Source: Auanema rhodensis (taxonomy: Eukaryota > Animalia > Nematoda). From it: a stretch of DNA of 64,000 bases. This document shows positions 2,229-23,903 of the stretch, one piece after another (position 1 is the first letter of the stretch; every line of letters begins with the position of its first letter). The stretch spans positions 16,802,001 to 16,866,000 of the forward strand of contig OZ059894.1 in assembly GCA_964057225.1 (NCBI GenBank), given 5' to 3'. Position numbers and translations under genes: made by a program. The notes under the pieces are model-generated. The model made no database searches and was not told the DNA's origin. It was given only the letters and a program-made list of their open reading frames with translations.

Positions 2229-2484
2229 ATTACATAAAACGGTTATTGTAAGAAATCTTCTCATCGTTATTCCTTACTTCGGGCCTAAATTAAATTATTG
2301 AAATTTTAGTTCTGTGTTAATTGTTTTAATTATTCAAATGCTGGAGAGCTGTGATTGTCCAAAAACTACGGAACTGATCCGTTAATAAAACGTTTTAACT
2401 CGAAAAAAAGATGTTCTTTGACGTTGGCTTAATGCCTTTTCGGATTTTTGAATAAACTTGGGGTGAATTATAAACTTTGTAAAG

Positions 2485-3152
2485 ATGCCTAGGTATGTTG
2501 TGCTGATATCTGGTAAGAGAAAGTCGGGGAAGGACTTTTGCTCGAAGATACTATCTGATGCCCTTGGTTGTAGTTATAAATGTGCTGTCATTGGGGTATC
2601 TCACAGTTTGAAAGAAGAGTATGCCATGAAACATGGTTTGTTCTCCTAAAGAAATGCTTTGTTATGAAAGTTACAGGACTGAAATACGAAGAGTTGTTAA
2701 CTGATAGTTTATACAAAGAAGAACACAGAGCTAAGATGATTATTTGGGGTGAAGCCAAGAGAAATTCTGATCCTGGCTATTTTTGCAGGTATAGCAGTAC
2801 TATTCCTAACTGTTGTAAATTCAAAGAAAAAACACACAGGGCTGCACTTAGTTCCGCAAAAAACGCTGTTATTGCTGTTATATCGGACTGTCGAAGAAAA
2901 TCTGACATGGAAGTTTTTAAATCATTGTTTTCTGATAGAAATGTTACTACAGTTCGAATAGAAGCTAGGGAAGAGACACGTATGAAGCGTGGCTATAAAT
3001 TTGTTGATGGTGTGGATAATACTGAATCAGAATGTGGATTGGACGATTATAAATTTGACTATATTATTAAGAATGATGAATGTGTTGAGGATGTTTCAGC
3101 AGTTCTCCAAGAGCTAGCGACCACAATAATAGGAAAACTTAATGAAAATTAA
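2485..3152 (+). CDS. PMVK: Phosphomevalonate kinase, animal type (3 exons)
   Basis: P-loop ISGKRKSGKDF from ATG 2485; YKEEHRAKMIIWGEAKRNSDPGYFCR, ISDCRRKSD and GVDNTESECGLDD match animal PMVK. Introns ~2636-2676 and 2789-2839. Confidence 0.95.
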
Positions 3153-3335
3153 GTACTGATAAGCATATTAGTATATAATGAATTTAGTAAAATATTTAAA
3201 AATTCTATGTATATTTAATAATATATCACGCGATTTCGTTATCTCTTATGATACCTGGTTGACATACTTTTCTGATATAATAAATAGTTATTTTCGATAA
3301 GGATTTTGCCATTTGTTTCTTCTGAGTTTTCAAAT

Positions 3336-5698
3336 ATGGCTGAGCTTGACGCTATTTTCAAGTACGTTTTAATTATTCTTTAACATAAAAGAATAAACTT
3401 GTAGGGATATTGATAATGCATATCCTCAATATCGAGATGTTTTGGCTGAGGCTGTAGCCATTGAAAGTGTATCTTCTGACCCAGCTCGCCGTCCTGATAC
3501 CGTTCGTATGTGTCATTGGATGAAGTGAGAAAACTTCTTCATTTATTTTAATTTTTTTACCTGTTTTGGTTTTCAAGTTTAGTTTTTTAATTGTTATAGA
3601 GAGCGTCTTGAGAAACTCGGTGTTGAAGTTGCTCTTCAAGATATTGGCAACCAAGTACTTGAAGGAACATCGGTAAAATAGATTTCAAGCAGTATTTTTG
3701 CTACGATTTGCTTGTAGGTTCCCCTACCTCCTGTAATTTTCGGAACTCTTGGAAAAGATAAAAGCAAAAAAACTCTTTTAGTATATGGTCATATCGGTTA
3801 GTTTTATCACTTGTGTGTTTTAAAAGCTACTAGTAGCATCCTTAAGAATTCATATTTTGAATTTATATATATATCAGAAATTTTCATAGTTTGATAAGAA
3901 TACCTATGCTCAGCTAAAACTTACTTTGTTATCTTTCTTATGCACACTGTTTATAGTTGTATTTCAGATGTACAGCCTGCTCAGAAGGAGGACGGGTGGA
4001 AGACTGAGCCTTTTGTTCTCACAGAAAGAGGTTTGAATGAATTTTACTAAGTTTTTATAATATAATATGAAAATTAACCGATTTTTTATTTATTTAAATA
4101 AGATATATTATCAATGCTTTAGCCTCTCCAACAATTGACTCAAAAATTTGAATGCAAGTTATAGTTAGAGAAACCAACACATAACTTTAGATGGTAAACT
4201 TTACGGAAGAGGATCTTCTGATGACAAAGGACCTGTATTGTGCTGGCTTCATGCCATTGCCATGATGCAAAAACATAATATCGACATCCCTGTTAATATT
4301 AAGTTTTGCTTTGAAGCTATGGAAGAAAGTGGTTCCGAAGGGCTTGAAGTATCTCTTTATTCATTTATACATTACACCTAGATTTGTTAAGGATCTTCTC
4401 ATCAGAGTTAAGGATACATTTTTGGCTGATGTTGACTTTTGTTGTATATCTGATAGTTACTGGCTTGGTAACACAAAGCCTTGTTTGACCTATGGTTTAA
4501 GGCTAGTTTGAAGTCCAGTCCGGTATGCTTACAGTTATATTTTAGAGGAATTTGTTCTTTTGGTGTTGAAATCACCGGTATCAATCAAGATCTTCACTCA
4601 GGTGTTTATGGTGGAGTAATGTAAGTAATGAAGCATAATTCAATTGAAACTGACCGAATTCTAATGAATTTAGTCATGAACCAATGTCTGATCTAGTTTG
4701 GATTCTCTCCCAACTTGTTACACACGATAACAGGATCCAAATCCCAGGTAGGTCACCTATTCGTTGGTCTTCTGACTATTTTATTTGTATTAGGAATTTA
4801 TAACGATGTTGCACCTATGACCACAAGTGAAACTTCTTTATACAGAGACATTGATTTCAGTGTCGAAGAATTCAAAAACAGTGTTGGAGCTAAGAAGCTT
4901 CCAGTCGAAGATAAAGAAACAGTCCTTATTAGAAGATGGCGAGAGCCTTGGTATAAATAAAAGGCTACAAATACTAAGAATTTAAATTAATTTCAGTCTA
5001 TCTATTCACGGAGTAGAAGGTGCCTTCTCCGGAAAAGGGGAAAAAACTGTAATTCCATCTAAAGTAATTGGAAAGTTCTCAATCAGAATTGTGCCCAACA
5101 TGAAACCAGAACAAGTAACCAAGTTGACAATTGATTACTTAAATAAGGTTTGGGCTACACGTGGATCTCCCAATACTTTCAAGTAATTTTAAAAAATATT
5201 AAATCTACTTTAAAATTTTGTTCAGGCCTGTCGGTCATCAAGGATTCTTACCATGGGTTGCTTCAACTACTGACCCTAACTATGTTGCGGGAGCACGCGC
5301 AATGCAAACAGGTAAATTACGGATATCACTTAATTAATATAATTTGTTTTTATATTTATCTGCTTTCATGTATTTTGATTTTTAGTTCATGGCGTTGATC
5401 CTGATTTGATCCGAGAGGGTTGCAGCATACCTATAACCTTAACTTTCCAGGTTAGTAAGTTAAATAATCAAGAATTATATAAAAATAATATAGTCTTCAA
5501 CCAAATAAAATGTAAAATTGTAATGTAATGCTATTTGACTTTGCAATTTAGGAACTCACCGGCAAAAATGTACTTCTATTGCCATTGGGTGCTTCTGATG
5601 ACATGGCTCACTCTCAAAATGAAAAGAATAATATAATTAACTACGTTCAGGGAGTAAAAACGCTTTTGGCATATATTCTCGAATTGGGAAAGGTTTAG
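3336..5698 (+). CDS. CNDP2: Cytosolic non-specific dipeptidase (peptidase M20A, CNDP2/pes-9 type), multi-exon
   Basis: Spliced motifs [66 protein letters not shown]; stop TAG 5696-5698. Confidence 0.95.
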
Positions 5699-5931
5699 AA
5701 TGTTGTTGATCGTACAAGATCATAGCGATGTGATATTGCTCGATAGTTGTATTTGTGTATTCTTATCTATTAAACAGTATATGATAACATTTGTTTTTTG
5801 AAGAACAAGAATAATGCCGAGAGTAACATTGTTATTGTGAATTTGATCTACAAGGCTTATCATTATGAAGAATATTTACTGATTCTCATCCATATAAAAA
5901 GTTGAAAAAATTGAAATTATTAGCTGTCATC

Positions 5932-6786
5932 ATGGTTCGACCAATTTTGATATGCTCTGTTCTCTTTCTCATGCTTTGCATATATGCAAGCGATGCTCAA
6001 AAAGTATTGAAGTTCTACAAAGGCTTGAAGAAAAAAATATTAAAGGTATGTTTAGAAGCGCCTTCACAGGCCAACATTTCTATTATAGGAGCACAATAAG
6101 CTTCGATCGAAATTTGCTAAAGGAAAGTTTACTGATGGCCAAGGTAACAAATTCCCTAAGGCTAAGGATATGATCAGACTTGTATGAAAACATAGCATAT
6201 AATATTTTATTTTATTAAATATTCAATCAGGTTTGGAATAAGAAAATGGCCAAAACAGCTGAAAAGGCTGCAAAGGCCTGCAAGATGGGTCCTCCAATCA
6301 ACAATAACTTGGGAGAAAGCCAGTTCACCGCCTTCTCTAACAGTACTATCGCCGATCCCGAAAATTTGGTATACAACTGAGCAAAGCTGATTGCAGTTCC
6401 ATTATGCTTATTTAGGCTTTGGATGCTGTTAAGGCATGGCTTAAGGAATTCGATCAGGGATGGAACCCTAATCTTTTAACCAAATCTGAAATTGGACATG
6501 CTATCCAAGTCTGAGCCTAAAATGAAGTCAAAAACTTAATATGCCATTTAGGCTGTATGGGGAAGAACTCGTAAAATCGGATGTGCTATTGTATCCTGTG
6601 ATGGTGGAAAAGGAGTTATGGTTGTCTGCGAATATGCACCAAAGTAAGTTGTCATCTGAGATCTGGCATATAATTGGCCATTATAGGGGTAATATGGCAA
6701 ACAAAAAGGCTTACAAACCTGGAAAAACCTGCCAAGCTTGTCCGAAACGCTTCAAATGCAACAAGAAGAAAGGACTATGCGGATAA
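5932..6786 (+). CDS. CAP/SCP/TAPS (venom-allergen-like) secreted protein 1; single domain, very Lys-rich, 6 exons
   Basis: Signal peptide MVRPILICSVLFLMLCIYASDA; EHNKLRSKFAKG, VWNKKMA, LGES, IGHAIQ|AVWGRTRKIGCA, VVCEYAPKGN, C-terminal CQACPKRFKCNKKKGLCG*. TATA-like TATAAAA at ~5893. Confidence 0.93.
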
Positions 6787-8011
6787 ATGATTTCTTTTAT
6801 GCGTATATGTGTATCTATACTTGTGTCTGTATTTACGGAAATATCGAACTCAATAAACTTTACATTCGCAATTAATGTGTATAATTCATAAAGAAAAACA
6901 GAAGCACCTTTTCTTATCAGTCTTTTTTTCTCAAAACGGAAGAACAATTTTGTATGACGTAATGTTACAGAGATTATAATTATTATTTACATATAAAAAC
7001 ATTATCATAATGATCGAAACCATATGAATTATAATAGTTTAATAACATTTCATATGAAGTAAGCGTTGATTTCATAAAATTTGTGCTTTTTTAATCTCAT
7101 AATAATATTATCTTTGAATCAGATTAATAACTGAAAATATTTGTTATATCAAGTTTTAAGTTGGGAAAGATTATGTATAAACTGATATGATTATTTTTTA
7201 TTAAGATTACTAGTTAGTTGTAGATCAAATCAAAAAACAGATTATTTTTGTTTATTAATTGTTTTTCTTAAATTATTAGAAAACAGCATTTATTTATGAA
7301 GATAACAAAATTTTTCAGATACAACAAATGATGCAAACTTCCATAAACTAATATTGATATATAATTATATGATAACACTGAAATGAACATTGAATATATG
7401 AATTAACAGTATTTTTTATGTTCACGTTTTCTTGAGAAAAATCATAAAAAAAAACCTCATTTATAAATTTGAAAAAAAACAATCGGTTGGTCATAATATT
7501 GCATCAGATCTTTTTAAGAATTCAACATTTTTCTGTATGGCGCCAATAGGTTTACTCAGTTTCAACTTGTTTAGCTGGAATTTATGATCTTGTTTTTATT
7601 ACAAAAAATAAGAAACTTTTTAAAATACGATGGATAGTAGAGATTGATATATAAAAATTTTCTAAGAGTACTATATATTAGTATTATGTTATGAAATGTT
7701 TATATTTACTACTATTTGATCATTGACTTCGTAAATGGGTGCAAATCTAAAAAAAACATTAAGTTGATAAAGCAGGACAATGTCTATAGCCTACAGTACA
7801 TAATTATAACGTTAGCTATTGAAATTCTAGTCTATGTGTGAGCTGATAATTTGACGTCGTTATGTTTTTTTTCCTAATCTAATATTGTATACAAATAGAT
7901 GCCTTCCTATTCATATGTTTGTTTAATGTAATATTCTTATCATACTAAGCTTATTTACCTACTTAGGTTTTTTTAAAGTGTCGGTTCTCATTTCCAAGCT
8001 CATTCGGTGCT

Positions 8012-8170
8012 ATGATGAGTCCGCGGCTGCTGCTGGCTATTTCGATAATAGGTATGATTTAGCTTTTGAATTATACGTTTTTTTCTTGAATTTCGAGAAA
8101 AAAAACCTTTTTTTCAGTCCTTCTTTTCCTATTACTGTTAATTATATATTTTTATATATAATAAATTGTG

Positions 8171-8201
<31 letters not shown>

Positions 8202-11200
8202 TATATATATATATATTATTTAATTAAATTAATATATAATATTAAATTTTATGTATTATTTTTGTTTAAAATTAAAACTCTTAATATTTAGCTGTCATCA
8301 GCGCTGATATAACCGGATCTGGTTCTGCACAGGATTTCTTAAATTGTAAGTCCTCCTAGTATAACTTTCTGTATTTCTTAAAATTCATGTTATAGATTTG
8401 CAATCTGCAAATAATGTGCAAGGTTATGCTTTACCAGATGGCGCTCTCATTCAGCCACAATTGTTACATAAGCTTCCCCCTGGATTCTCCGTCAGCTCTC
8501 GCCCTGTCGTAACTAAGATTCCGGGTGTCATGATGAGTATGACTAGCAACGCCGGTTATGGTCCTATAAATAACAACCAGATATCTAATGTAATATCTGG
8601 AATGCAATTGGACAATGGAGAAGTACCTTGCGAAAAAACTTTGTTCGCACTCAGAGAAGTAACAGGACTTGGAATGGCACAACTTGCTGCTGCCACAAAC
8701 CAGATTTTGGGTCAGCTTGCACTAGCTATCGGAAGTATAACTGGTCACACCAACAGTTTACCTCCTAGCACTACTGGGGATATCTCAGATTATGACCTGT
8801 CATTTTACTTAATGACTGGTACTTTACCAGGAAAACTCTATTCACCTGAATACACGTTGAATAATATCCTGATAACTTCTGATTCATCTCCTTTCTGGAA
8901 CCCCGTTGATGGATGGAACACCGAGCCTACTGATGAAACTCCTGATCATATTGATCTGGAAAACACATTCAGCTATTTCAATATTCCAAACTTCATACCT
9001 CACCAAATCGGATATCCTACATTGACACCAGTAGACTTAGGATACGAACCAACTAATCCCTCAACCAACCCTGGTAGTCCAGTGGTTTTCAAAATTACCA
9101 TTCCAGATTATCTAGCACCATTCTTCCCAAATGGCCAGATTCCTCCTCAGTTCCCTGTTTTCATGCAGACTCTGATTATAACCGTTCAGAAACATCACAT
9201 ATCACCAGAAACTATGCAGATTCCACCCGCTCTTATGATGTTTTTCCCGGGCAGAAATGTTCCTTTCGAAGTTATACAATTTGTATATCAAACGTTGGTC
9301 GAGCACACCTTGTATATTCGCTATATTCCTCTTGAGCTGGCTCAATATTTCCCTAACGGTCAATTCCCACAAACGTTCATCGATTTCATTTTGAAATTGA
9401 GCACTGGTGTCTCTATCCCACCTGAGGATGTTGTCCCAACCTTGGTTATTTTCTTCCCAAGCGGAACAGTCCCAGAGCCAGTGGTGAACTTTGTCATAAA
9501 CTTTATTTTCACTCACTCTTTACCGGAAACTGACGAGGAACAGGAAAACCTTCCAACAGATTCGTATCCAGAAACAATGTCTCCAGAAGAGATCTCAGTT
9601 CCTGAAGAATTGGCACCTTACTTCCCAGAAGAAGAAATTCCCGAAGAATTTATCGACTTCCTCAAGGATTTGGCACCCTATCTTGAACAACAAGGAAGCA
9701 TGCCAATAACATTCCAAATTCCTGAAAAATTAATGATTTTCTTCCCAACTGGTGAAATACCATTACCAATTTTAAATTTCATACAAAACTTCATCATTAC
9801 ATGGCATAAGCCAACAGACACACCACAGCCCATTGATGACTCCCCACTTCTGAAACCAACAGATGAAGAACCAGATGAGGAAACTGATGACGATCTCAGC
9901 GTAGAAAACGATGAAGAATTCCCAACTGATTCATACCCAGAAGGCACAAGTCCTGAAGAGATCACCGTACCTGAAGAGCTCGCCCCATACTTCCCACAAG
10001 GACAGATTCCACAGCTTTTCATCGACCTCTTGAAGGATCTTACCTTCACTCTTGATTCACCTGACACCAACAGATATACCGTCACTTTGCCGATTGAGTT
10101 CACATTCCTCTTCCCAGATGGCCAAATCCCAGAACCAGTTCAGAAGTTTATCGTGAACTTCATTCTCACTTGGCATCACCCAACCCACAAGCCAACAAGT
10201 CCCATGGATCCAACTGGAGAAGAGCCAGAGTATGGAGAACCAACATACGAAGACCCAACAGGAGAAGAGCCAGTGTATGGAGAACCAACAAACGAATACC
10301 CAACTGGAGAAGAGCCAGTGTATGGAGAACCAACAAACGAATACCCAACTGGAGAAGAACCTGTATATGGAGAACCAGACGAGGAAACTGATGACGATCT
10401 CAGCGTAGAAAACGATGAAGAATTCCCAACTGATTCATACCCAGAAGGCACAAGCCCTGAAGAGATCACCGTACCTGAAGAGCTCGCTCCATACTTCCCA
10501 CAAGGTGAGGTTCCAGAAGAATTTGTCGACATGTTAAAGGAACTTACTTTCACCCTTGATTCACCTGGCACCAACAGATTCACCATCCCACTGCCTATGG
10601 AGTTCACATTCCTCTTCCCTAATGGTCAAATCCCAGAACCAGTTCAGAAGTTTATCATGAACTTCATTCTCACTTGGCATCACCCAACACACAAGCCAAC
10701 AGGCCCCGTTGGTGATCACCCAACCCACAAGCCAGTAGGCCCCGTTGCTGATCACCCATTAGAATTCATTCCTGATGAGTATTCACCTGAGGATATCTCA
10801 GAATATGAAGCCACATACGAGGACCCAACAGGTGAAGAGCCAGTGTATGGAGAACCAACAAACGAATACCCAACAGGACAACCACTAGAGGATATAGAAC
10901 CAAAATACGATTTCCCAACAGGAGAAGAGCCAGTGTATGGAGAACCAACAAACGAATACCCAACTGGAGAAGAACCTGTGTATGGAGAACCAGACGAGGA
11001 AACTGATGACGATCTCAGCGTAGAAAACGATGAAGAATTCCCAACAGATTCATACCCAGAAGGCACAAGTCCTGAAGAGATCACCGTACCTGAAGAGCTC
11101 GCCCCATACTTCCCACAAGGACAGATTCCACAGCTTTTCATCGACCTCTTGAAGGATCTTACCTTCACTCTTGATTCACCTGACACCAACAGATATACCG

Positions 11201-14200
11201 TCACTTTGCCGATTGAGTTCACATTCCTCTTCCCAGATGGCCAAATCCCAGAACCAGTTCAGAACTTTATCGTGAACTTCATTCTCACTTGGCATCACCC
11301 AACACACAAGCCAACAAGTCCCATGGACCCAACTGGAGAAGAGCCAGAGTATGGAGAACCCACATACGAAGACCCAACAGGAGAAGAGCCAGTGTATGGA
11401 GAACCCACATATGAAGACCCAACAGGAGAAGAGCCAGTGTATGGAGAACCAACAAACGAATACCCAACTGGAGAAGAACCTGTATATGGAGAACCAGACG
11501 AGGAAACTGATGACGATCTCAGCGTAGAAAACGATGAAGAATTCCCAACTGATTCATACCCAGAAGGCACAAGTCCTGAAGAAATCACCGTACCTGAAGA
11601 GCTCGCCCCATACTTCCCACAAGGACAGATTCCACAGCTTTTCATCGACCTCTTGAAGGATCTTACCTTCACTCTTGATTCACCTGACACCAACAGATAT
11701 ACCGTCACTTTGCCGATTGAGTTCACATTCCTCTTCCCTGATGGTCAAATCCCAGAACCAGTTCAGAAGTTTATCGTGAACTTCATTCTCACTTGGCATC
11801 ACCCAACCCACAAGCCAACAGGACCCGTTGCTGATCACCCATTAGAATTCATTCCTGATGAGTATTCACCTGAGGATATCTCAGAATATGAAGCCACATA
11901 CGAGGACCCAACAGGAGAAGAGCCAGTGTATGGAGAACCAACAAACGAATACCCAACTGGAGAAGAGCCAGTGTATGGAGAACCAACAAACGAATACCCA
12001 ACTGGAGAAGAACCTGTATATGGAGAACCAGACGAGGAAACTGATGACGATCTCAGCGTAGAAAACGATGAAGAATTCCCAACTGATTCATACCCAGAAG
12101 GCACAAGTCCTGAAGAGATCACCGTACCTGAAGAGCTCGCCCCATACTTCCCACAAGGACAAATTCCACAGCTTTTCATCGACCTCTTGAAGGATCTTAC
12201 CTTCACTCTTGATTCACCTGACACCAACAGATATACCGTCACTTTGCCGATTGAGTTCACATTCCTCTTCCCAGATGGCCAAATCCCAGAACCAGTTCAA
12301 AACTTTATCGTGAACTTCATTCTCACTTGGCATCACCCAACACACAAGCCAACAAGTCCCATGGAGCCAACTGGAGAACAGCCAGAGTATGGAGAACCCA
12401 CATACGAAGACCCAACAGGAGAAGAGCCAGTGTATGGAGAACCAACAAACGAATACCCAACTGGAGAAGAACCTGTGTATGGAGAACCAGACGAGGAAAC
12501 TGATGACGATCTCAGCGTAGAAAACGATGAAGAATTCCCAACTGATTCATACCCAGAAGGCACAAGTCCTGAAGAGATCACCGTACCTGAAGAGCTCGCC
12601 CCATACTTCCCACAAGGACAAATTCCACAGCTTTTCATCGACCTCTTGAAGGATCTTACCTTCACTCTTGATTCACCTGACACCAACAGATATACCGTCA
12701 CTTTGCCGATTGAGTTCACATTCCTCTTCCCAGATGGCCAAATCCCAGAACCAGTTCAAAACTTTATCGTGAACTTCATTCTCACTTGGCATCACCCAAC
12801 ACACAAGCCAACAAGTCCCATGGAGCCAACTGGAGAACAGCCAGAGTATGGAGAACCCACATACGAAGACCCAACAGGAGAAGAGCCAGTGTATGGAGAA
12901 CCAACAAACGAATACCCAACTGGAGAAGAACCTGTATATGGAGAACCAGACGAGGAAACTGATGACGATCTCAGCGTAGAAAACGATGAAGAATTCCCAA
13001 CTGATTCATACCCAGAAGGCACAAGCCCTGAAGAAATCACCGTACCTGAAGAACTTGGAGAATCGTTCCCAGAAGGTGAGGTTCCAGAAGAATTTGTCGA
13101 CATGTTAAAGGAACTTACTTTCACCCTTGATTCACCTGGCACCAACAGATTCACCATCCCACTGCCTATGGAGTTCACATTCCTCTTCCCTAATGGTCAA
13201 ATCCCAGAACCAGTTCAGAAGTTTATCATGAACTTCATTCTCACTTGGCATCACCCAACACACAAGCCAACAGGCCCCGTTGGTGATCACCCAACCCACA
13301 AGCCAGTAGGCCCCGTTGCTGATCACCCATTAGAATTCATTCCTGATGAGTATTCACCTGAGGATATCTCAGAATATGAAGCCACATACGAGGACCCAAC
13401 AGGAGAAGAGCCAGTGTATGGAGAACCAACAAACGAATACCCAACAGGAGAAGAGCCAGTGTATGGAGAACCAACAAACGAATACCCAACTGGAGAAGAG
13501 CCAGTATATGGAGAACCAGAAGAGGAAACTGATGACGATCTCAGCGTAGAAAACGATGAAGAATTCCCAACTGATTCATACCCAGAAGGCACAAGCCCTG
13601 AAGAAATCACCGTACCTGAAGAACTTGGAGAATCGTTCCCAGAAGGTGAGGTTCCAGAAGAATTCGTCGACATGTTAAAGGAACTTACTTTCACCCTTGA
13701 TTCACCTGGCACTAACAGATTCACCATCCCATTGCCTATGGAGTTCACATTCCTCTTCCCTAACGGTCAAATCCCAGAACCAGTTCAGAAGTTTATTATG
13801 AACTTCATTCTCACTTGGCATCACCCAACCCATAAGCCAACAAGTCCCATGGACCCAACTGGAGAACAGCCAGAGTATGGAGAACCAACATACGAAGACC
13901 CAACAGGAGAAGAGCCAGTGTATGGAGAACCAACAAACGAATACCCAACTGGAGAAGAGCCAGTGTATGGAGAACCAACAAACGAATACCCAACTGGAGA
14001 AGAACCTGTATATGGAGAACCAGAAGAGGAAACTGATGACGATCTCAGTGTAGAAAACGATGAAGAATTCCCAACTGATTCATACCCAGAAGGCACAAGC
14101 CCTGAAGAAATCACCGTACCTGAAGAACTTGGAGAATCGTTCCCAGAAGGTGAGGTTCCAGAAGAGTTCGTCGACATGTTAAAGGAACTTACTTTCACCC

Positions 14201-17200
14201 TTGATTCACCTGGCACCAACAGATTCACCATCCCATTGCCTATGGAGTTCACATTCCTCTTCCCTAATGGTCAAATCCCAGAACCAGTTCAGAAGTTTAT
14301 CATGAACTTCATTCTCACTTGGCATCACCCAACCCACAAGCCAACAAGTCCCGTGGACCCAACTGGAGAACAGCCAGAGTATGGAGAACCCACATACGAA
14401 GACCCAACAGGAGAAGAGCCAGTGTATGGAGAACCAACAAACGAATACCCAACTGGAGAAGAACCTGTATATGGAGAACCAGACGAGGAAACTGATGACG
14501 ATCTCAGTGTAGAAAACGATGAAGAATTCCCAACTGATTCATACCCAGAAGGCACAAGCCCTGAAGAAATCACCGTACCTGAAGAACTTGGAGAATCGTT
14601 CCCAGAAGGTGAGGTTCCAGAAGAGTTCGTCGACATGTTAAAGGAACTTACTTTCACCCTTGATTCACCTGGCACCAACAGATTCACCATCCCATTGCCT
14701 ATGGAGTTCACATTCCTCTTCCCTAATGGTCAAATCCCAGAACCAGTTCAGAAGTTTATCATGAACTTCATTCTCACTTGGCATCACCCAACCCACAAGC
14801 CAACAAGTCCCGTGGACCCAACTGGAGAACAGCCAGAGTATGGAGAACCCACATACGAAGACCCAACAGGACAAGAACTAGAGGATATAGAACCAAAATT
14901 CGATTTCCCAACTGGAGAAGAACCTGTATATGGAGAACCAGACGAGGAAACTGATGACGATCTCAGTGTAGAAAACGATGAAGAATTCCCAACTGATTCA
15001 TACCCAGAAGGCACAAGCCCTGAAGAGATCACCGTACCTGAAGAACTTGGAGAATCGTTCCCAGAAGGTGAGGTTCCAGAAGAATTCGTCGACATGTTAA
15101 AGGAACTTACTTTCACCCTTGATTCACCTGACACCAACAGATTCACCATCCCATTGCCTATGGAGTTCACATTCCTCTTCCCTAATGGTCAAATCCCAGA
15201 ACCAGTTCAGAAGTTTATCATGAACTTCATTCTCACTTGGCATCACCCAACCCACAAGCCAACAAGTCCCGTGGACCCAACTGGAGAACAGCCAGAGTAT
15301 GGAGAACCAAACGAGGAGACTGATGACGATCTAAGCGTAGAAAACGATGATGAGGAAGAATTACCAAAAGATTCTTATCCTCTCAGTGTTACTCCAGACG
15401 AGATTACTGTTCCCGAAGAACTTGGAGAATCGTTCCCAGAAGGTGAGGTTCCAGAAGAATTCGTCGACATGTTAAAGGAACTTACTTTCACCCTTGATTC
15501 ACCTGACACCAACAGATTCACCATCCCATTGCCTATGGAGTTCACATTCCTCTTCCCTGGTGGTCAAATCCCAGAACCAGTTCAGAAGTTTATCATGAAC
15601 TTCATTCTCACTTGGCATCACCCAGAACAATCGTCTCATCCATCCAAGGAACCTGAGCAAAACAGTCCATTCTCCCCTAACATGTACCCCGAAGATATGA
15701 GTCCTGAAGAAATTACTGTTCCTGAAGAACTCACTCCTTACTTCCCACAAGGAGAAGTTCCAGATCAATTCATCATCATGTTGCAGAAGCTCACATTCAC
15801 TCTTGATTCGCCCACAACAGATCGTTTGAAGTTCCCATTCCCAATGGAATTCACAGTTCTCTTCCCCGGAGGAAAAATTCCGTTGCCAGTTCAACAGTTC
15901 ATCACAAACTTTGTTCTTACTTGGCATAAACCACATGAACCTTCTCATCCAGTTGATGAACCCGAAGAGGAATCGGATGACGATCTCAGTGTTATAAACC
16001 CTGATGAGGAAAATCCATTCCCTACTGACTCTTACCCTATCGGAATGACTCCTGATGAGATCACAGTACCTGAAGAGCTCGCCCCATACTTCCCACAAGG
16101 ACAAGTCCCAATTCAATTTATCATCATGTTGCAGAAGCTCACATTTACTCTTGATTCACCTACAACGGATCGGTTAAACTTCCCATTCCCAATAGAATTC
16201 AAGGTTCTCTTCCCCGCAGGAAAAATTCCAAAGCCAATTCAACAGTTCATCATCAACTTTGTTCTCACTTGGCACAAACCTACAACGACATCTCCAGTTT
16301 CTGATAAGCCTGGAACTTTATATCCATCGACTATGACTCCTGATCAAATAACAGTGCCAATAATGTTTGGACAGTTCTTCCCAGGTGGTCAGATTCCAGT
16401 ACAGTTCATCATAAGCGTGAAGAAATTAGCTCAAACGATTGATAGCCCATATACTGATCGTTTCAGCTACCCATTCCCATTCGAATTCACATCAATGTTC
16501 CCAGCTGGAAATATGCCTACTGAAATCAAACAGTTCCTTAAGATTTTCATTATGACTTGGCATAAGCCAGATAATCAGTTCCCAACTGATTCTTATCCCA
16601 CTAACATGTCACCAGATCAAATCACAGTCCCATCTGATCTTGCCAAGTACTTCCCAGAAGGCAAAATTCCACAGCAATTCATTGTCTACTTGCAACAACT
16701 GGCACCAACCCTTGATCAGCCATTCACCGATCGTTACAACATCCCATTCCCATTCCAATTCTCAGGATTGTTCCCTGGTGGTAAGGTACCAGACCAGGTT
16801 AAGAGCTTTATCTTAACTTTCATCATCACATGGCACAAGCCATTGCCATTAGTTCCATCTACCAACGATGAACCTACCACTACTTCTGAGGATTTATCTG
16901 ACATTAAGGTACCTGAAGAACTCGGACAGTACTTCATTGGTGGATCTATTCCAATTCAATTCATCATATTCTTGAAAACATTGACTAAGGAGATTTCCCC
17001 CGGACATATTCCACCTATTTCTATTCCTGTCGAAGTCGTTCAATTGTTCCCTAATAACAATATTCCTCCACAAGTAATCGAATTTATTCAAAACTTCTTG
17101 ATGACCTGGTTGAATCCAACCAACCCTACTACCAATGTTGTGTCAATCTCCGTACCTCCTGAGTTGGGAATATACTTCCCCGGAGGTACTGTGCCCATGG

Positions 17201-20200
17201 AATTTTTGGTTTTCCTTCAAGATATCGCACCATCAGGCGAACATCCAATTACTATTAACCCTGATGGCTCCTTCACTATGCCACAAGAAATCTACAAATT
17301 CTGGCCTAGTGGACTTGTTCCACAACCTGTTTTGGTCTTCTTGCAAACTGTTATACAGCAATGGCAAACCCAGTCTCAAAACGACCCTCAATCACCAGAT
17401 GCTATAAACATCCCTCCCGAGATAAGTCTTTATTTCCCAGGACGACAGATTCCTCAATCATTCTTAATTTTCCTTCAAAACTTAGCACCAGGTGGAAGCA
17501 ATCCAGCTACAATGAACCCTGACGGTTCCTTCACACTGCCTCAGGAGGTATTCCAATTCTTCCCTGGAGGCCAAGTTCCACAACCTGTAATGGACTTCAT
17601 CATGTCAATTCTGAAAAAATACGTCACCATGCAATCTGGTCCAGCACAGACAATCAGCATTCCAGGCAATCTTGGGTTATACTTCCCTGGAGGAGTAGTA
17701 CCACCAACATTCATGACATTCATACAGACTATTGCCCAGAAAAAACTTTTGAAGACAAATCCTGATGGAAGCATTATTCCTCCACCGGGAATCGAACAAT
17801 TCTTCCCTTCAGGAATAGTTCCACCACCAGTTCTTGCTGTTTTTGAGCAACTTCTTTCAAATCAGCCACCAAAGAAAACCGATACTCCTGGCACTATGAC
17901 CATTGAGTTCCCTCTTAGTTTAGGACAATTTTTCCCAGGTGGAGTGATTCCTGAAGATTTCAAGATCTTCATCTTATCACTTGGACCAAGTGGATCTAAT
18001 GAGCTCAAACCATCACCTGACGGATCATACGCAATCCCACAAGGAATTCTCACCTTCTTCCCAACTGGTGATATTCCAGCTCCAGTTATGCAATTTATTC
18101 AAACTTGTATATCCACCTTCAAGAACCCATCAAACACAAAAAACATGATCACTATTCAAATTCCCGCTTCTCTTGTTGCATATTTCCCAGGAAACGTTGT
18201 ACCACAAGCTTTCGTCACATATCTTCAGAACTTATCCCCACAAGGATCAAATCCATTGATTATTAGACCAGACGGATCTTGGTCATTACCTCCTGGGCTT
18301 AATGTTCTCTTCCCCGGATACATGGTACCACAACCTGTTATGGATTTCATCTCAAATCTTGTGATGCAATGGCAAACAGGAAAACCAACACCAGATTCAG
18401 ATATCATGAACTTTAAGGAATTCACCATTCCAGCGACTATTAACCACTATTTCCCTGAAGGAAAAGTTCCCCACAGCTTCATGATGTTCTTGCAAGGATT
18501 AGCACCAAACGGAAGCAACCCTGTAGAAATTCATCCAGATGGAACTATGACTATTCCGTCCCAGATTACATCATTCTTCCCAGGCGGAATATGTCCTCCT
18601 GAGGTTATAGAAGTTGTACAAAACTTTGTTCATTCATGGTATAAGAAACCAATACAGTCTTTTAACCCTGGACAGTTGCCGTTTTTTCCGTTAGGCGGAA
18701 CTGAGAGTCCGCCGAACCAAGTATCTCCTCCAGCTGACGGTACCGAAATCCCCACCATTAACACTCCAGAAGAACAACCAACTGATGATTCTGAAACTCT
18801 AGTGGAAGAGCCCGAAATACCTATTGACGGTTCCGAAACTCCAGTCGACGAAACAGAAGTACCAACTGATGATTCTGAGACTCTAATTGAAGAACCCGAA
18901 ATACCTATTGACGGTTCCGAAACTCCAGTCGACGAAACAGAAGTACCAACTGATGATTCTGAGACTCTAATTGAAGAACCCGAAATACCTATTGACGGTT
19001 CCGAAACTCCAGTCGAAGGATCAGAAGAACCAATTGATGATTCTGAGACTCTAGTAGAAGAGCCTGAAATACCTATTGATGGCACTGAGACTCCAGTCGA
19101 AGGATCTGAAGAAGATACTGAAGATTCTGAATATCCTGATGAAGAATACGAAGAACCTACTGAAGCTTCAGAAACTCCAATAGATGAATCCGAAGAACCA
19201 ACTGAAGATTCTGAAAACCCTGACGAGGAATACGAAGAACCAACTGATGATACCGAAACTCCAGAAGAAGAATCGGAAGAGTCAACTGGTAATGTAGAAA
19301 CGCCAGGATTTGTAGCAGCAGATACAAACAGTCACACTGGTCCACAAATGCCAGGAAACGATGATGATTATAATTATTATGAAGAGAACACCGGAACTGA
19401 GCCTTCAGACGAATCGCCTGGCGATGATGATGAAGAATCAGAGGAAAACACTGGAACATCGCCTGATGACGATGATGAAGAGTACGAAGAAAACACTGGA
19501 ACATCGCCTGATGACGATGATGAAGAGTACGAAGAAAACACCGGAGGATCGCCTGGCGATGATGATGAAGAATCAGAAGAAAACACTGGAACATCGCCTG
19601 ATGACGATGATGAAGAGTACGAAGAAAACACTGGAACATCGCCTGATGACGACGATGAAGAGTACGAAGAAAACACCGGAGGATCGCCTGATGACAATGA
19701 TGAGGAATCGGAAAATAACACCGGAACATCGCCTAATGACGATGTTGAAGAATCTGAACAGAATACTGGAACATCACCTAATAGTGATGATGGAGAGTAC
19801 GAATATCCTGAAGGAGATCCTAGCTACCCATATGAGGATACCTATGAGGAATATGATCCAGAATATGATGAAGAGAACACCGGTGGCGGAAAACCAGGAG
19901 GAAACCCAGGTGGACAAGGTGGAAGCCCTGGTGGAAATGGAGGAAACCTAGGTGGAAATCCTAATGGAAACCCAGGTGGACAAGGTGGAAGCCCTGGTGG
20001 AAATGGAGGAGACCTAGGCGGAAAACCTAATGGAAACCAAGGTGGACCAATTAAAGGAAATCCTGCTGGAACTGGTAACGGACTAACACCGGGTAACGGT
20101 GGAAATGGAGGTGGACTTGGAACCGGAACAGCAGGAGGCAATCCGTCTGGCATGGGTACTGGCACAGCAGGCAATCCGTCCGGCATGGGTACTGGCACAG

Positions 20201-21537
20201 CAGGAGGCAATCCGTCCGGCATGGGTACTGGCACAGCAGGCAATCCGTCCGGCATGGGTACTGGCACAGGAGGAGGCAATCCCTCCGGCATGGGTACTGG
20301 CACAGGTGGAGGAAGCCCATCCGGCTTTGGTACTGGCACAGGAGGAGGAAGCCCATCCGGATTTGGTACTGGCACAGGAGGAGGAAGCCCATCCGGCTTT
20401 GGTACTGCTACCGGAGGCGGCTCTGGATCAGGCTTTGGTACTGCTACCGGAGGCGGCTCTGGATCAGGCTTTGGTACTGCTACCGGAGGCGGCTCTGGAT
20501 CAGGCTTTACTACATCGACAGGTGGAGGTAGTGGAAGCAATATCGGTTTTGGAACAGGAGGAAACGGTGGAATCAGCTTTGGTACTGATTCCGGAGGAGG
20601 CAGTGGATCCAGTTTTGTTACTGACACCGGATCTGCAACAGGATCTAGTTGGGTCAGTAACACTGGCTCAAGTAGTGCCAATGAATGGAAAAAGAATGCT
20701 CGGCTAAATCCTGCTCAAATCCAACAAGTCATATCGGTACGTCAAAATTGAAAACTGGATTATAAACCAATCTTTAATTTAGGCTCACAATAAACCAAGA
20801 TCCCAAATTGCCAAGGGCTTATTCTTGGATGGAACAAACTCAACAATGCCATCTGCCGCTAACATGTTCCGAGTGGTAAACATTACATAGATTAAATCAG
20901 TATTTGATTGATATGAATTCTAGAATTGGGATGAGACACTTGCAAAGAGTGCTCAGCGTGCGTCCAACACTTGCTCACCTAAATCCATTAACTTCACCAC
21001 TGTTGGTGAAAATACTTATTATGTAAAATTGGACAGATTGATTAAGAATCCACAATTTCATGTATGTCTTAAAAATAGTTCTGGATAACTATATGAACTT
21101 TTAGGCTGTGAAAGCTGTTGAATCATGGTTCGATGAGTTAGCCAATAATCCATGGAACGAACAAAGTAGCATGGCTGGTATGCAAGAAGGTTTCCAAGTG
21201 AGTTTACTGATTTATGCAGAAATATTTTACTTAAAATCACCTTTCTAACTATATTTCTAATATAATGCTTAAGGTTGCTTGGGGCCGTACTCGTAAAGTT
21301 GGTTGCGGAGTTACAAACTGTGAAAGTGGTGTAGCGGTTTTGGTCACTTGTCACTATTTGCCAAAGTAAGATTTTTTTGAATTTTAATTATAGTTTTTTA
21401 ATATTATTTGATATTTTTTTAATAAAAATGCTTTCAGACCAAAAGACTTCGGACCAATCACTTATATACCTGGACAAATGTGCTCGCAATGTACAGGAAA
21501 TACTGTTTGTAATCCGAACACAGGACTATGCATATAA
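8012..21537 (+). CDS. Giant secreted repeat protein (~4,316 aa) with a C-terminal CAP/SCP domain, 8 exons
   Basis: Exons 8012-8051 and 8292-8345 (signal peptide MMSPRLLLAISIIAVISA), 8396-20736 (12,341 bp, open), then CAP exons 20783-20875, 20924-21061, 21105-21197, 21274-21365, 21438-21537: AHNKPRSQIAKG, NWDETLA, VGEN, VAWGRTRKVGCG, VTCHY, CSQCTGNTVCNPNTGLCI*. All junctions are GT-AG and in phase. Confidence 0.9.
8173..8215. repeat. (TAA)n(TA)n microsatellite in intron 1 of the giant CAP gene
   Basis: taataataataa...atatatatat read directly. Confidence 0.9.
9088..18651 (+). repeat. Coding array of 26 copies of a ~70-80 aa domain with twin P-x2-[LF]-x2-[YFL]FP-x-G-x-[IV]P motifs
   Basis: Counted in the translation. 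The 12 central copies (~9860-15620) are near-identical in DNA, with periods 459/504/534/570/615 bp; flanking copies are diverged. Confidence 0.9.
18778..19880 (+). repeat. Acidic coding repeats (PTDDSETLIEEPEIPIDGSETPVDETEV; ENTGTSPDDDDEEYE)
   Basis: 84-bp and 45-bp tandem units visible in DNA and protein. Confidence 0.9.
19882..20670 (+). repeat. Gly-rich coding repeats (GGNPGGQGGSPGG; GGNPSGMGTGT; GGGSPSGFGTGT; GGGSGSGFGTAT)
   Basis: 33-36 bp tandem units directly upstream of the CAP domain. Confidence 0.9.
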
Positions 21538-21887: not shown

Positions 21888-23903
21888 ATGAAACTTGCTA
21901 CTATCTTTATTACATGGCTCGTAATAGGTAAGCTTATATCTCTTATTATATTTTCGATTACTATTACCTTTATTTCAGTTGATGTAGATGCGATTGCAAT
22001 TAATCGTAGGCGAAAACAGTCATTGAGACGGGAATGTAAGTACAATTTAGTTTATTTCCATTTAAACTTCTTTCAGTTCTGCTCTCTCAAAACAGTGGAA
22101 ATGCCTTCGGTGTGCTGCTGGAAAATGTCTCTAGACAATATGATGGATCCAAGTCCATTTTAACAGATTCCACTTGGTATGATGGTCGATCGATTGATTC
22201 CCGAGCTGCTCAGAAGAAAGGAGGAAATAAGCCCCAACAGAAACCAGCTCACAAGCCCGCACCCAAGCCAGCTCACAAGCCCGCACCCAAGCCAGCTCAG
22301 AAGCCAGCACATAAGCCAGCACAAAAGCCAGCACACAAACCAGCGAAAAAACCAGTAAAAAAGCCAGTGAAGAAACCAGCAAAAAAGCCAGTGAAGAAGC
22401 CAGGATCCAAGCCACAACCTTCAAAAAAACCTGGTAATAAACCGGCAAAAAAACCTGGTCAGAGACCGGGAAAGAGACATCGCAAGAGGCGTTGTCAAAG
22501 GCACAGAAGACCTGGCAAGAGACCTGGCAGAAGACGTTGTAGAAAGCGCCGAAAAAGGCCAGGCAAAAAACCCAAACCAAATAAGAAGAAGAAGCCAGGT
22601 AAGAAACCAAAACCTCACCAAAAAAAAAAGAAAAAGACCAAGCCTGGTTCTAAACCAAAACCAGAATCCAAACCCGAGTCTAAGCCCGATTCAGGTTCAA
22701 ATTCAAAGCCGGAGTCAAAGCCGGAGTCGACGCCTGATTCGAAGCCGGAGTCGAAGCCGGAGTCGAAGCCTGAGTCAAAGCCTGATTCTAAGCCTGAGTC
22801 GAAGCCGGAGTCAAAGCCTGATTCTAAGCCTGATTCTAAGCCTGAGTCTAAGCCAGAATCGAAGCCTGAGTCGAAGCCGGAGTCGAAGCCGGAGTCGAAG
22901 CCGGAGTCCAAACCAGAGTCGAAACCAGAGTCAAAGCCAGAGTCGAAACCTGATTCAAAGCCTGAGTCAAAGCCTGAGTCAAAGCCTGAGTCGAAGCCTG
23001 AGTCGAAGCCTGAGTCAAAGCCTGAGTCGAAGCCTGAGTCGAAGCCTGAGTCAAAGCCGGAAACAAACCCTGATTCTAATCCTGAAACTTCAGCAAAACC
23101 AAAACCTGGGGCTGTTAAGTTCAATCCGAAAGCAATTCAGGAGATTCTTGATGTAAACTGATTTTTTACACTTTTAGAAATTCTTCAATAAATGAAAATA
23201 TTCAGGAGCATAACGATTTACGTTCTCGTCTTGCTAAAGGAAGCTTTAAGGATGGCAACGGAGTTTCAAAGCCTGAAGGGAGTGATATGCTGAAATTGGT
23301 TCTTATCTTTTCGAGATATAACATACAAAATCAATTTAAGGAATGGGATCCCAAATTGGCCAATTCAGCTCAAGAAGTTACTGATACATGTGAATTCAAA
23401 CACTCTGGAAAACCAGATCTTGGTGAAAATTTACATACATATACATCGTCTAAAGGCATAACAGATCCTCAAGCAGGAGTAAGTTAAATTTACTGTTTAA
23501 CAACGTATTGATGTTATATTTAGGGTAAAAAGGCCGTTGCTAGTTGGAACAGCGAGTTTGATAAGTATGGCTGGTCAAGCATGAAGCTAGAAGATAAGAT
23601 TGGACATGCTACTCAAGTAAATCTCTAAATAGATTAACTCAAAATAACATTGAAATATTCTAATACAGGATGTATGGAGTACTACGAAACGTGTTGGATG
23701 CGCCATTACCATATGCGAAGAGGGAAAACGCGGTTTAGTTGCATGTCATTATCAACCGATGTTAGAAAAGTAATGAAAACCAATTAAATTGCAATTCTTT
23801 TAGGGGTAACTACAAAAATAGAGATGTTTATGAAGCTGGAGCAGTGTGTTCGGATTGTCCAAGTGGCACAACATGCGAACGCTCAACAGGATTATGCGTT
23901 TAA
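21888..23903 (+). CDS. CAP/SCP/TAPS secreted protein 3 with Lys/Arg/Pro-rich and KP(E/D)S-repeat N-terminal region, 8 exons
   Basis: Exons 21888-21927, 21979-22035, 22077-23152, then CAP exons: [40 protein letters not shown]|[39 protein letters not shown]. Confidence 0.92.
22229..23088 (+). repeat. 12-bp coding tandem repeats: [16 protein letters not shown], an Arg/Lys block, then ~30 KP(E/D)S
   Basis: AAGCC(T/G)GAGTC(G/A) units; translation of ORF 22112-23161. Confidence 0.92.

Follow-up and report, generated by a model that had tools for sequence, protein, structure and literature searches.

Secreted repeat proteins restricted to single lineages are frequent in nematodes. Among the described systems closest to the locus analysed here, the NPA unit of ABA-1 is about 133 amino acids (aa) long, consists of seven helices with two cavities, and is released at regular K/R-x-K/R-R sites (PMC3079579). 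The present study concerns a 64,000-nucleotide (nt) stretch of the Auanema rhodensis genome (GenBank assembly GCA_964057225.1, contig OZ059894.1, positions 16,802,001–16,866,000 of the forward strand), hereafter the window, in which a giant exon encodes a tandemly repeated unit of two similar halves, the twin-FPxG unit. The explanation that we consider probable, with some reserve, is that the unit is a real, lineage-restricted module of approximately 76 aa, which would be strung as 26 beads on acidic linkers within a secreted CAP protein of approximately 4300 aa acting as a scaffold. Judged from its sequence, the unit belongs to no described family among those compared.

The extent of the repeat was determined using a self-iterated hidden Markov model (HMM) on the exon protein, which converged from a single starting unit and revealed 26 units of 70–78 aa. 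All 26 units were present in a single 12.3-kb exon (8396–20736, forward strand), and no further copies could be found in the rest of the window by a six-frame scan. The consensus derived from alignment A1, which consisted of 18 distinct units, was xITVPxELxxYFPxGxVPxxF for the first half and PxExxxLFPxGxIPxPVxxFIxNFIxTW for the second half, with P5, F12, P18, F21, P53, and P58 invariant across the alignment. The two halves were homologous to each other according to hhalign (probability 97.4%, E 9.5e-12). Prominent in the unit composition were P (13.8%), F (10.7%), I (9.2%), and L (9.0%); the residues F/I/L/V/M/W/Y together accounted for approximately 40%, and Cys was nearly absent (2 of 1974 residues over all units). 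Approximately 14 units could be regarded as distinct (<70% identity), while units 4–15 consisted of two subtypes, 75–100% identical, arranged in higher-order repeats of 459 bp. When the HMM was trained on units 3–19 alone, the held-out units 1, 2, and 20–26 scored 28–70 bits, compared to 12.2 bits or less for composition-preserving shuffles (n = 889 scored). A sequence-only reading of this DNA had placed 26 copies at 9088–18651, described a motif for each half, and claimed that the hydrophobic pattern persists in the diverged terminal copies; the HMM gave exactly this number, the consensus reproduced both motifs, and the scores of the held-out units bore out the persistence of the pattern.

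The layout of the array and of the remainder of the giant exon was as follows.

9091–18651, forward strand: unit array defined by the self-iterated HMM, with the first unit at 9091–9312 and the last unit at 18418–18651
9091–9816, forward strand: units 1–3, old diverged copies with short linkers, 25–53% identical to other units
9958–15627, forward strand: units 4–15, two recently amplified subtypes with acidic Pro/Glu/Tyr linkers of 49–129 aa built on a 15-aa PTGEEPVYGEPTNEY repeat
15709–17121, forward strand: units 16–20, intermediate divergence, linkers of 15–40 aa
17143–18651, forward strand: units 21–26, old copies whose halves are separated by an NPDGS insertion, linkers of 5–11 aa
8396–9090, forward strand: N-terminal non-repeat head of approximately 231 aa, no Pfam family at E ≤ 10
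18652–20736, forward strand: low-complexity tail, no Pfam family, its final residues being the start of the probable CAP domain
18771–19288, forward strand: acidic 42/84-bp repeats in the tail
19413–19803, forward strand: acidic 45/135-bp repeats in the tail
from approximately 19888, forward strand: Gly-rich GxGxG/GFGT repeats in the tail

Units and linkers together made up approximately three quarters of the giant exon, and the units alone approximately half. Linker length over the whole array ranged from 2 to 129 aa, and the linkers consisted of 21% E, 18% P, 11% D, 11% T, and 7% Y; 84 of the 145 Tyr residues of the giant exon were located in an acidic context. Tandem repeats with periods of 45 and 459 bp and 94–97% match occupied the region of units 4–15. 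His-rich strings ended the central units (TWHHPTHKPT; HPTHKPVGPVADHP in some linkers) between 10180 and 15260 of the window and were absent from the old terminal units; they may act as sites sensitive to metal or pH that only the amplified subtypes possess. On the minus strand, one antisense open reading frame (ORF) of 104–156 aa recurred per repeat through the linker repeats (9202–15170). These periodic ORFs, including those of 128–156 aa found in each repeat, were rejected as genes, since the repeats are GAA/CCA-rich and poor in stops and such a composition would produce open frames of this kind.

Structure prediction of a single unit using AlphaFold2 with alignment A1 yielded a predicted local distance difference test score (pLDDT) of 92.2 and a predicted template modelling score (pTM) of 0.80, and all five models ranged from 89 to 92 in pLDDT. 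Four helices were predicted at residues 6–11, 19–32, 46–51, and 59–71, so that in each half an FPxGx[IV]P loop would connect a short first helix to a long, hydrophobic second one. Both long helices were hydrophobic across more than half of their face. The invariant Pro residues were located at the helix starts and the invariant Phe residues in or beside the loops; this conservation of helix caps and core fits a structural or binding module rather than an enzyme. No set of polar, acidic, His, or Cys residues was conserved in the unit, which makes an enzyme or a strictly required metal site less likely. A model of a tandem pair (17143–17634), based on an alignment of seven non-overlapping pairs (A3), reproduced the four-helix topology in both units with pLDDT 80–92 and showed a small beta bridge at the NPDGS insertion. 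The linker of the pair received a pLDDT below 50, the pTM of the pair was 0.48, and no fixed packing of one unit on the other was predicted; given this loose linker, the units look like independent beads on a string in the model. A rigid solenoid such as a TPR/HEAT-like superhelix was rejected on the basis of the low linker pLDDT and pair pTM together with linkers of up to 129 aa.

The coding status of the array was evaluated at the level of substitutions. The open frame extended over 4117 codons (8398–20751, forward strand), and the G+C content over the giant exon was 0.42–0.47 compared to approximately 0.30 in the flanks. The ratio of nonsynonymous to synonymous substitutions (Ka/Ks) between units was 0.10–0.45, with Ks often above 1 and saturated between the old copies. 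The units are under protein-level constraint. An array with no functional domain, produced either by minisatellite-like expansion with a fortuitous frame or by over-prediction of AlphaFold on proline-rich low complexity, would agree with the near-identity and recent amplification of the central 12 copies, with the plainly low-complexity remainder of the exon, and with the absence of homologues that would show conservation between species. Nevertheless, such an explanation is highly improbable in view of the 12.3-kb open frame in a region of approximately 30% G+C, the spliced RNA covering the 5' end, the retention of the motif in old, Ks-saturated copies at the above Ka/Ks values, the failure of same-composition shuffles to score, and the consistently high pLDDT of all five models.

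Relatives of the unit were searched for at the sequence and structure levels. Pfam searches with 18 single units gave no family even at E ≤ 10, and the search with the whole exon gave only DUF7919 (PF25535), with 37.6 bits from summed weak matches and 0 passing stretches. Membership in DUF7919 was rejected, since the score was a summed compositional one and single units match nothing. The best match of a sequence profile search of PDB had an E of 0.52, which is noise, and included no NPA chain. Foldseek comparison against PDB gave E 6.6 or worse. In the ESM Atlas, the shape search reached a template modelling score (TM) of at most 0.56 over partial ranges and the feature search gave no usable match. 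In the length classes 2262–7198 and 321–1022 aa, a word-index search covering 5.8 billion proteins returned nothing, an exhaustive HMM search of 1.84 billion protein representatives returned 0 matches, and two scans of metagenome contigs revealed no relative. Alternatively, the unit may have diverged strongly from a helical family that is already described (e.g., an EF-hand pair, TPR-like repeat, NPA, or Pfam DUF); twin helix-loop-helix modules of approximately 70 aa are a common architecture, the summed DUF7919 score was obtained on the whole protein, and structure searches separate small helical folds poorly. This explanation appears improbable.

As a calibration of the libraries, the exon of the neighbouring phosphomevalonate kinase gene was searched; its best match was from C. 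elegans with 48% identity, and no copy from its own species or congeners was found. The libraries therefore contain neither the source species nor its near kin, and "orphan" accordingly means absent outside the lineage. At the sensitivity of the HMM, the domain is excluded from the sampled nematodes and from everything else searched, a coverage that does not extend to sister species. With respect to the sequence-only reading, which had described a folded, essentially Cys-free, pseudo-symmetric helical module without a named Pfam family, the predicted four-helix fold, the two Cys residues, and the empty Pfam searches were all in agreement. The HMM search, the single-unit and tandem-pair AlphaFold models, and the Foldseek comparison that it had suggested produced no confident match to a known domain, with the unit predicted to be folded. 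Its proposal of a new small domain held insofar as no homologue or clear fold match was obtained, while the claim of orphan status had to be narrowed to libraries that lack close relatives. The sequence-only reading had further proposed that the unit perhaps binds a hydrophobic ligand or self-assembles, with high avidity from the 26 copies, and it made no mention of the surrounding CAP gene, of which the array would be the N-terminal payload.

The transcription and structure of the gene were assessed using four public RNA runs from one study, in which approximately half of the sampled words of the region 5800–9900 were present, as for spliced RNA. Seven GT..AG joints were present in the RNA contigs, five of which were in a separate upstream gene and two at the 5' end of the giant gene (8048/8289 and 8345/8396, both in contigs of runs X1–X3). 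The contigs spanned 8396–9900, entering the array, and then broke at the repeats at approximately 9900. The exons of the giant gene were as follows.

8012–8048, forward strand: exon 1, start codon and most of the putative signal peptide (MMSPRLLLAISII...); contigs of three runs start at 8009–8014
8289–8345, forward strand: exon 2, putative signal peptide end (..AVISA/DITG..) and start of the mature protein
8396–20736, forward strand: giant exon 3, 4113 full codons, net charge approximately -670
20783–20875, 20924–21022, 21105–21197, 21274–21365, and 21438–21537, forward strand: putative CAP exons with the stop at 21535–21537 and GT..AG introns of 46–82 nt

The spliced N-terminus (MMSPR, a hydrophobic run, then ISA/DITG) resembled a typical signal peptide when read by eye, which suggests that the protein would be secreted. 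The first intron of the giant gene (240 nt) contained an (ATA)n/AT-rich simple repeat at 8165–8248. At its 3' end, the giant exon stops at 20736 and is followed by an in-frame GT..AG intron of 46 nt (20737–20782), and the next exon opens with AHNKPRSQIAKG. Joining exons 1–3 to the five CAP exons yields a predicted coding sequence of 12912 nt, divisible by 3, which would encode 4303 aa. CAP profile (PF00188) searches were run exon by exon; 21274–21363 matched profile positions 91–117 with E 9e-4 and 20.5 bits (cut-off 21.1), and 20924–21013 matched positions 18–38 with E 0.015, while exon 6552–6641 of the upstream gene gave E 8.7e-5 and 23.8 bits. A phase-0 intron directly before [E/A]HN had an identical position in each of the three clustered CAP genes. 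On the basis of the in-frame intron, the exon-wise profile matches, and the intron position common to both neighbours, the giant gene probably has a CAP (SCP/TAPS) domain at its 3' end. This terminal domain, together with paralogy, probably places the gene as a whole in the CAP superfamily.

The two neighbouring CAP genes were arranged as follows.

5936–6869, forward strand: CAP-only neighbour gene of 6 exons, recovered as a spliced 709-nt contig with five GT..AG joints; a separate, more abundant transcript
21889–23900 (end approximate), forward strand: downstream paralogue with a signal-peptide exon, a mini exon, a basic KP-rich payload exon, and a CAP domain

The possibility of a single gene running from the upstream CAP gene into the giant exon was rejected, as the RNA revealed two separate transcripts. 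The payload of the downstream paralogue was KP/KPES-rich, with an open frame at 22112–23161 and a net charge of +64 over 22112–23152. The three tandem CAP paralogues shared intron positions and carried no payload, an acidic giant payload, and a basic payload, respectively; in both the giant gene and the downstream paralogue, the signal-peptide exon came first and a mini exon second. In run X4, the contig depth of the CAP-only gene was in the thousands and the giant gene was nearly absent, compared to a ratio of approximately 6 to 1 in runs X1–X3; although contig depth is a poor measure and the samples are identified only by code, this suggests that the paralogues are used in a stage-, sex-, or tissue-specific manner. 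The regions 2485–3152 and 4238–5700 of the window contained the phosphomevalonate kinase gene (PF04275) and, upstream on the forward strand, exons resembling an M20-type dipeptidase, which are ordinary housekeeping neighbours.

In the favoured explanation, a half of approximately 35 aa would have been duplicated to form the twin unit, which would fold alone into a closed four-helix unit. The protein would run from a signal peptide through the 231-aa head, the 26 units, and the acidic and Gly-rich tail to a C-terminal CAP domain, with strongly acidic Pro/Glu/Thr/Tyr linkers that are probably disordered. An extended, polyanionic extracellular scaffold is the best guess at its function; the hydrophobic helical beads may provide many weak, repeated binding or cross-linking sites, whether for a matrix partner or among the beads themselves, and the single CAP domain may serve as a lipid/sterol-binding or anchoring end. 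The recent amplification of 12 near-identical central units would suggest that length or valency, rather than a diversity of specificities, was under selection. Several points weigh against this scaffold explanation. The junction of the giant exon and the CAP exons lies outside the RNA coverage because the contigs break at approximately 9900, and the proposed function is drawn from architecture alone. The AlphaFold2 models were built on shallow alignments consisting only of paralogues (18 and 7 rows), and the reach of the libraries is too short to tell whether the domain occurs in sister species. Since units 4–15 are near-identical, the total of 26 depends on correct assembly, and the copy number in this block may be an assembly estimate.

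The twin-FPxG unit can be regarded as a candidate new protein family, with a confidently predicted fold and no detectable relative in 1.84 billion representatives, Pfam, or PDB. The presence of old and young copies in one exon represents a compact record of a domain built from a half-unit and then amplified. The CAP genes of this nematode may represent a secretion chassis for very different payloads (net charge -670 versus +64). If the units do bind lipids or cross-link the matrix, they would constitute a new type of module in nematode extracellular biology; otherwise, the locus would represent a well-documented lineage-specific repeat protein. The gene is best described as that of a probable secreted nematode CAP/tandem-repeat protein carrying a new domain family, and the orphan module, with its legible duplication history, merits a Pfam entry.

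Comparison with known systems revealed partial likeness to four of them. The first is the NPA family, e.g., Ascaris ABA-1, which is similarly nematode-restricted and secreted, with tandem small all-helical units, few or no introns, and an internally duplicated unit with hydrophobic helices. The present unit differs from that of NPA in its length of 76 aa, its four predicted helices, its acidic linkers of up to 129 aa, and the probable CAP end. No K/R-x-K/R-R motif occurred in the 4113 aa of the giant exon, and the linkers contained 1.9% K and no R; the absence of furin sites indicates that this is not an NPA-type polyprotein. An NPA-like polyprotein was therefore rejected for lack of cleavage sites, of sequence or fold similarity to NPA, and of a seven-helix unit of approximately 133 aa.

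The resemblance to NPA bears on a further explanation, in which the units would be small binders of hydrophobic ligands (fatty acid, sterol, or retinoid) forming an uncleaved, tethered lipid sponge, an NPA analogue with a lipid-binding CAP domain. It would be consistent with the high proportion of hydrophobic residues in the units and the hydrophobic faces of both long helices. In ABA-1A, a lipid cavity is enclosed by each of the four-helix bundles of approximately 66 aa, and the ABA-1A unit likewise represents an internal duplication in a nematode tandem array (PMC3079579). In addition, binding of sterol and palmitate has been described for the CAP domains of nematode VALs (PMC5893428, PMC5893361). 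The analogy is countered by the missing furin-type sites and the absence of detectable similarity to NPA, and the explanation is possible but doubtful. A more specific version is unlikely, though worth stating, namely that twin-FPxG is a new fold and family that arose in one rhabditid lineage by stepwise duplication (35-aa half, twin unit, 26-unit array) as an independently evolved lipid/sterol binder, the uncleaved counterpart of polyprotein lipid carriers, with a sterol-binding CAP domain.

The second system is the EF-hand pair, which also has approximately 70–76 aa and two homologous helix-loop-helix halves in one four-helix unit. The FPxGx[IV]P loop of the present unit, unlike that of an EF-hand, contains no acidic ligand residues, and an EF-hand pair was rejected since acidic Ca2+-binding loops of 12 residues are missing and neither the Pfam, the PDB-sequence, nor the fold searches gave a match. 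The third system comprises the nematode CAP/SCP-TAPS proteins (VAL, ASP, SCL; PF00188), with which the giant gene shares the signal peptide, the probable C-terminal CAP domain, and the intron positions common to its two paralogues. It differs from described CAP proteins in the payload of approximately 4100 aa that separates the signal peptide from the probable CAP domain. To our knowledge, no CAP protein with such an array has been described, and a literature search found no CAP protein with a comparable one. Finally, the protein is similar to giant mucin-like or low-complexity secreted repeat proteins in its huge single exon, its repeats made uniform in recent times, its linkers rich in Pro/Thr/Glu, and its tails of acidic and Gly-rich sequence. 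It differs from mucin-like repeat proteins in that the units, which occupy approximately half of the exon, are predicted to be folded helical modules and not disordered repeats.

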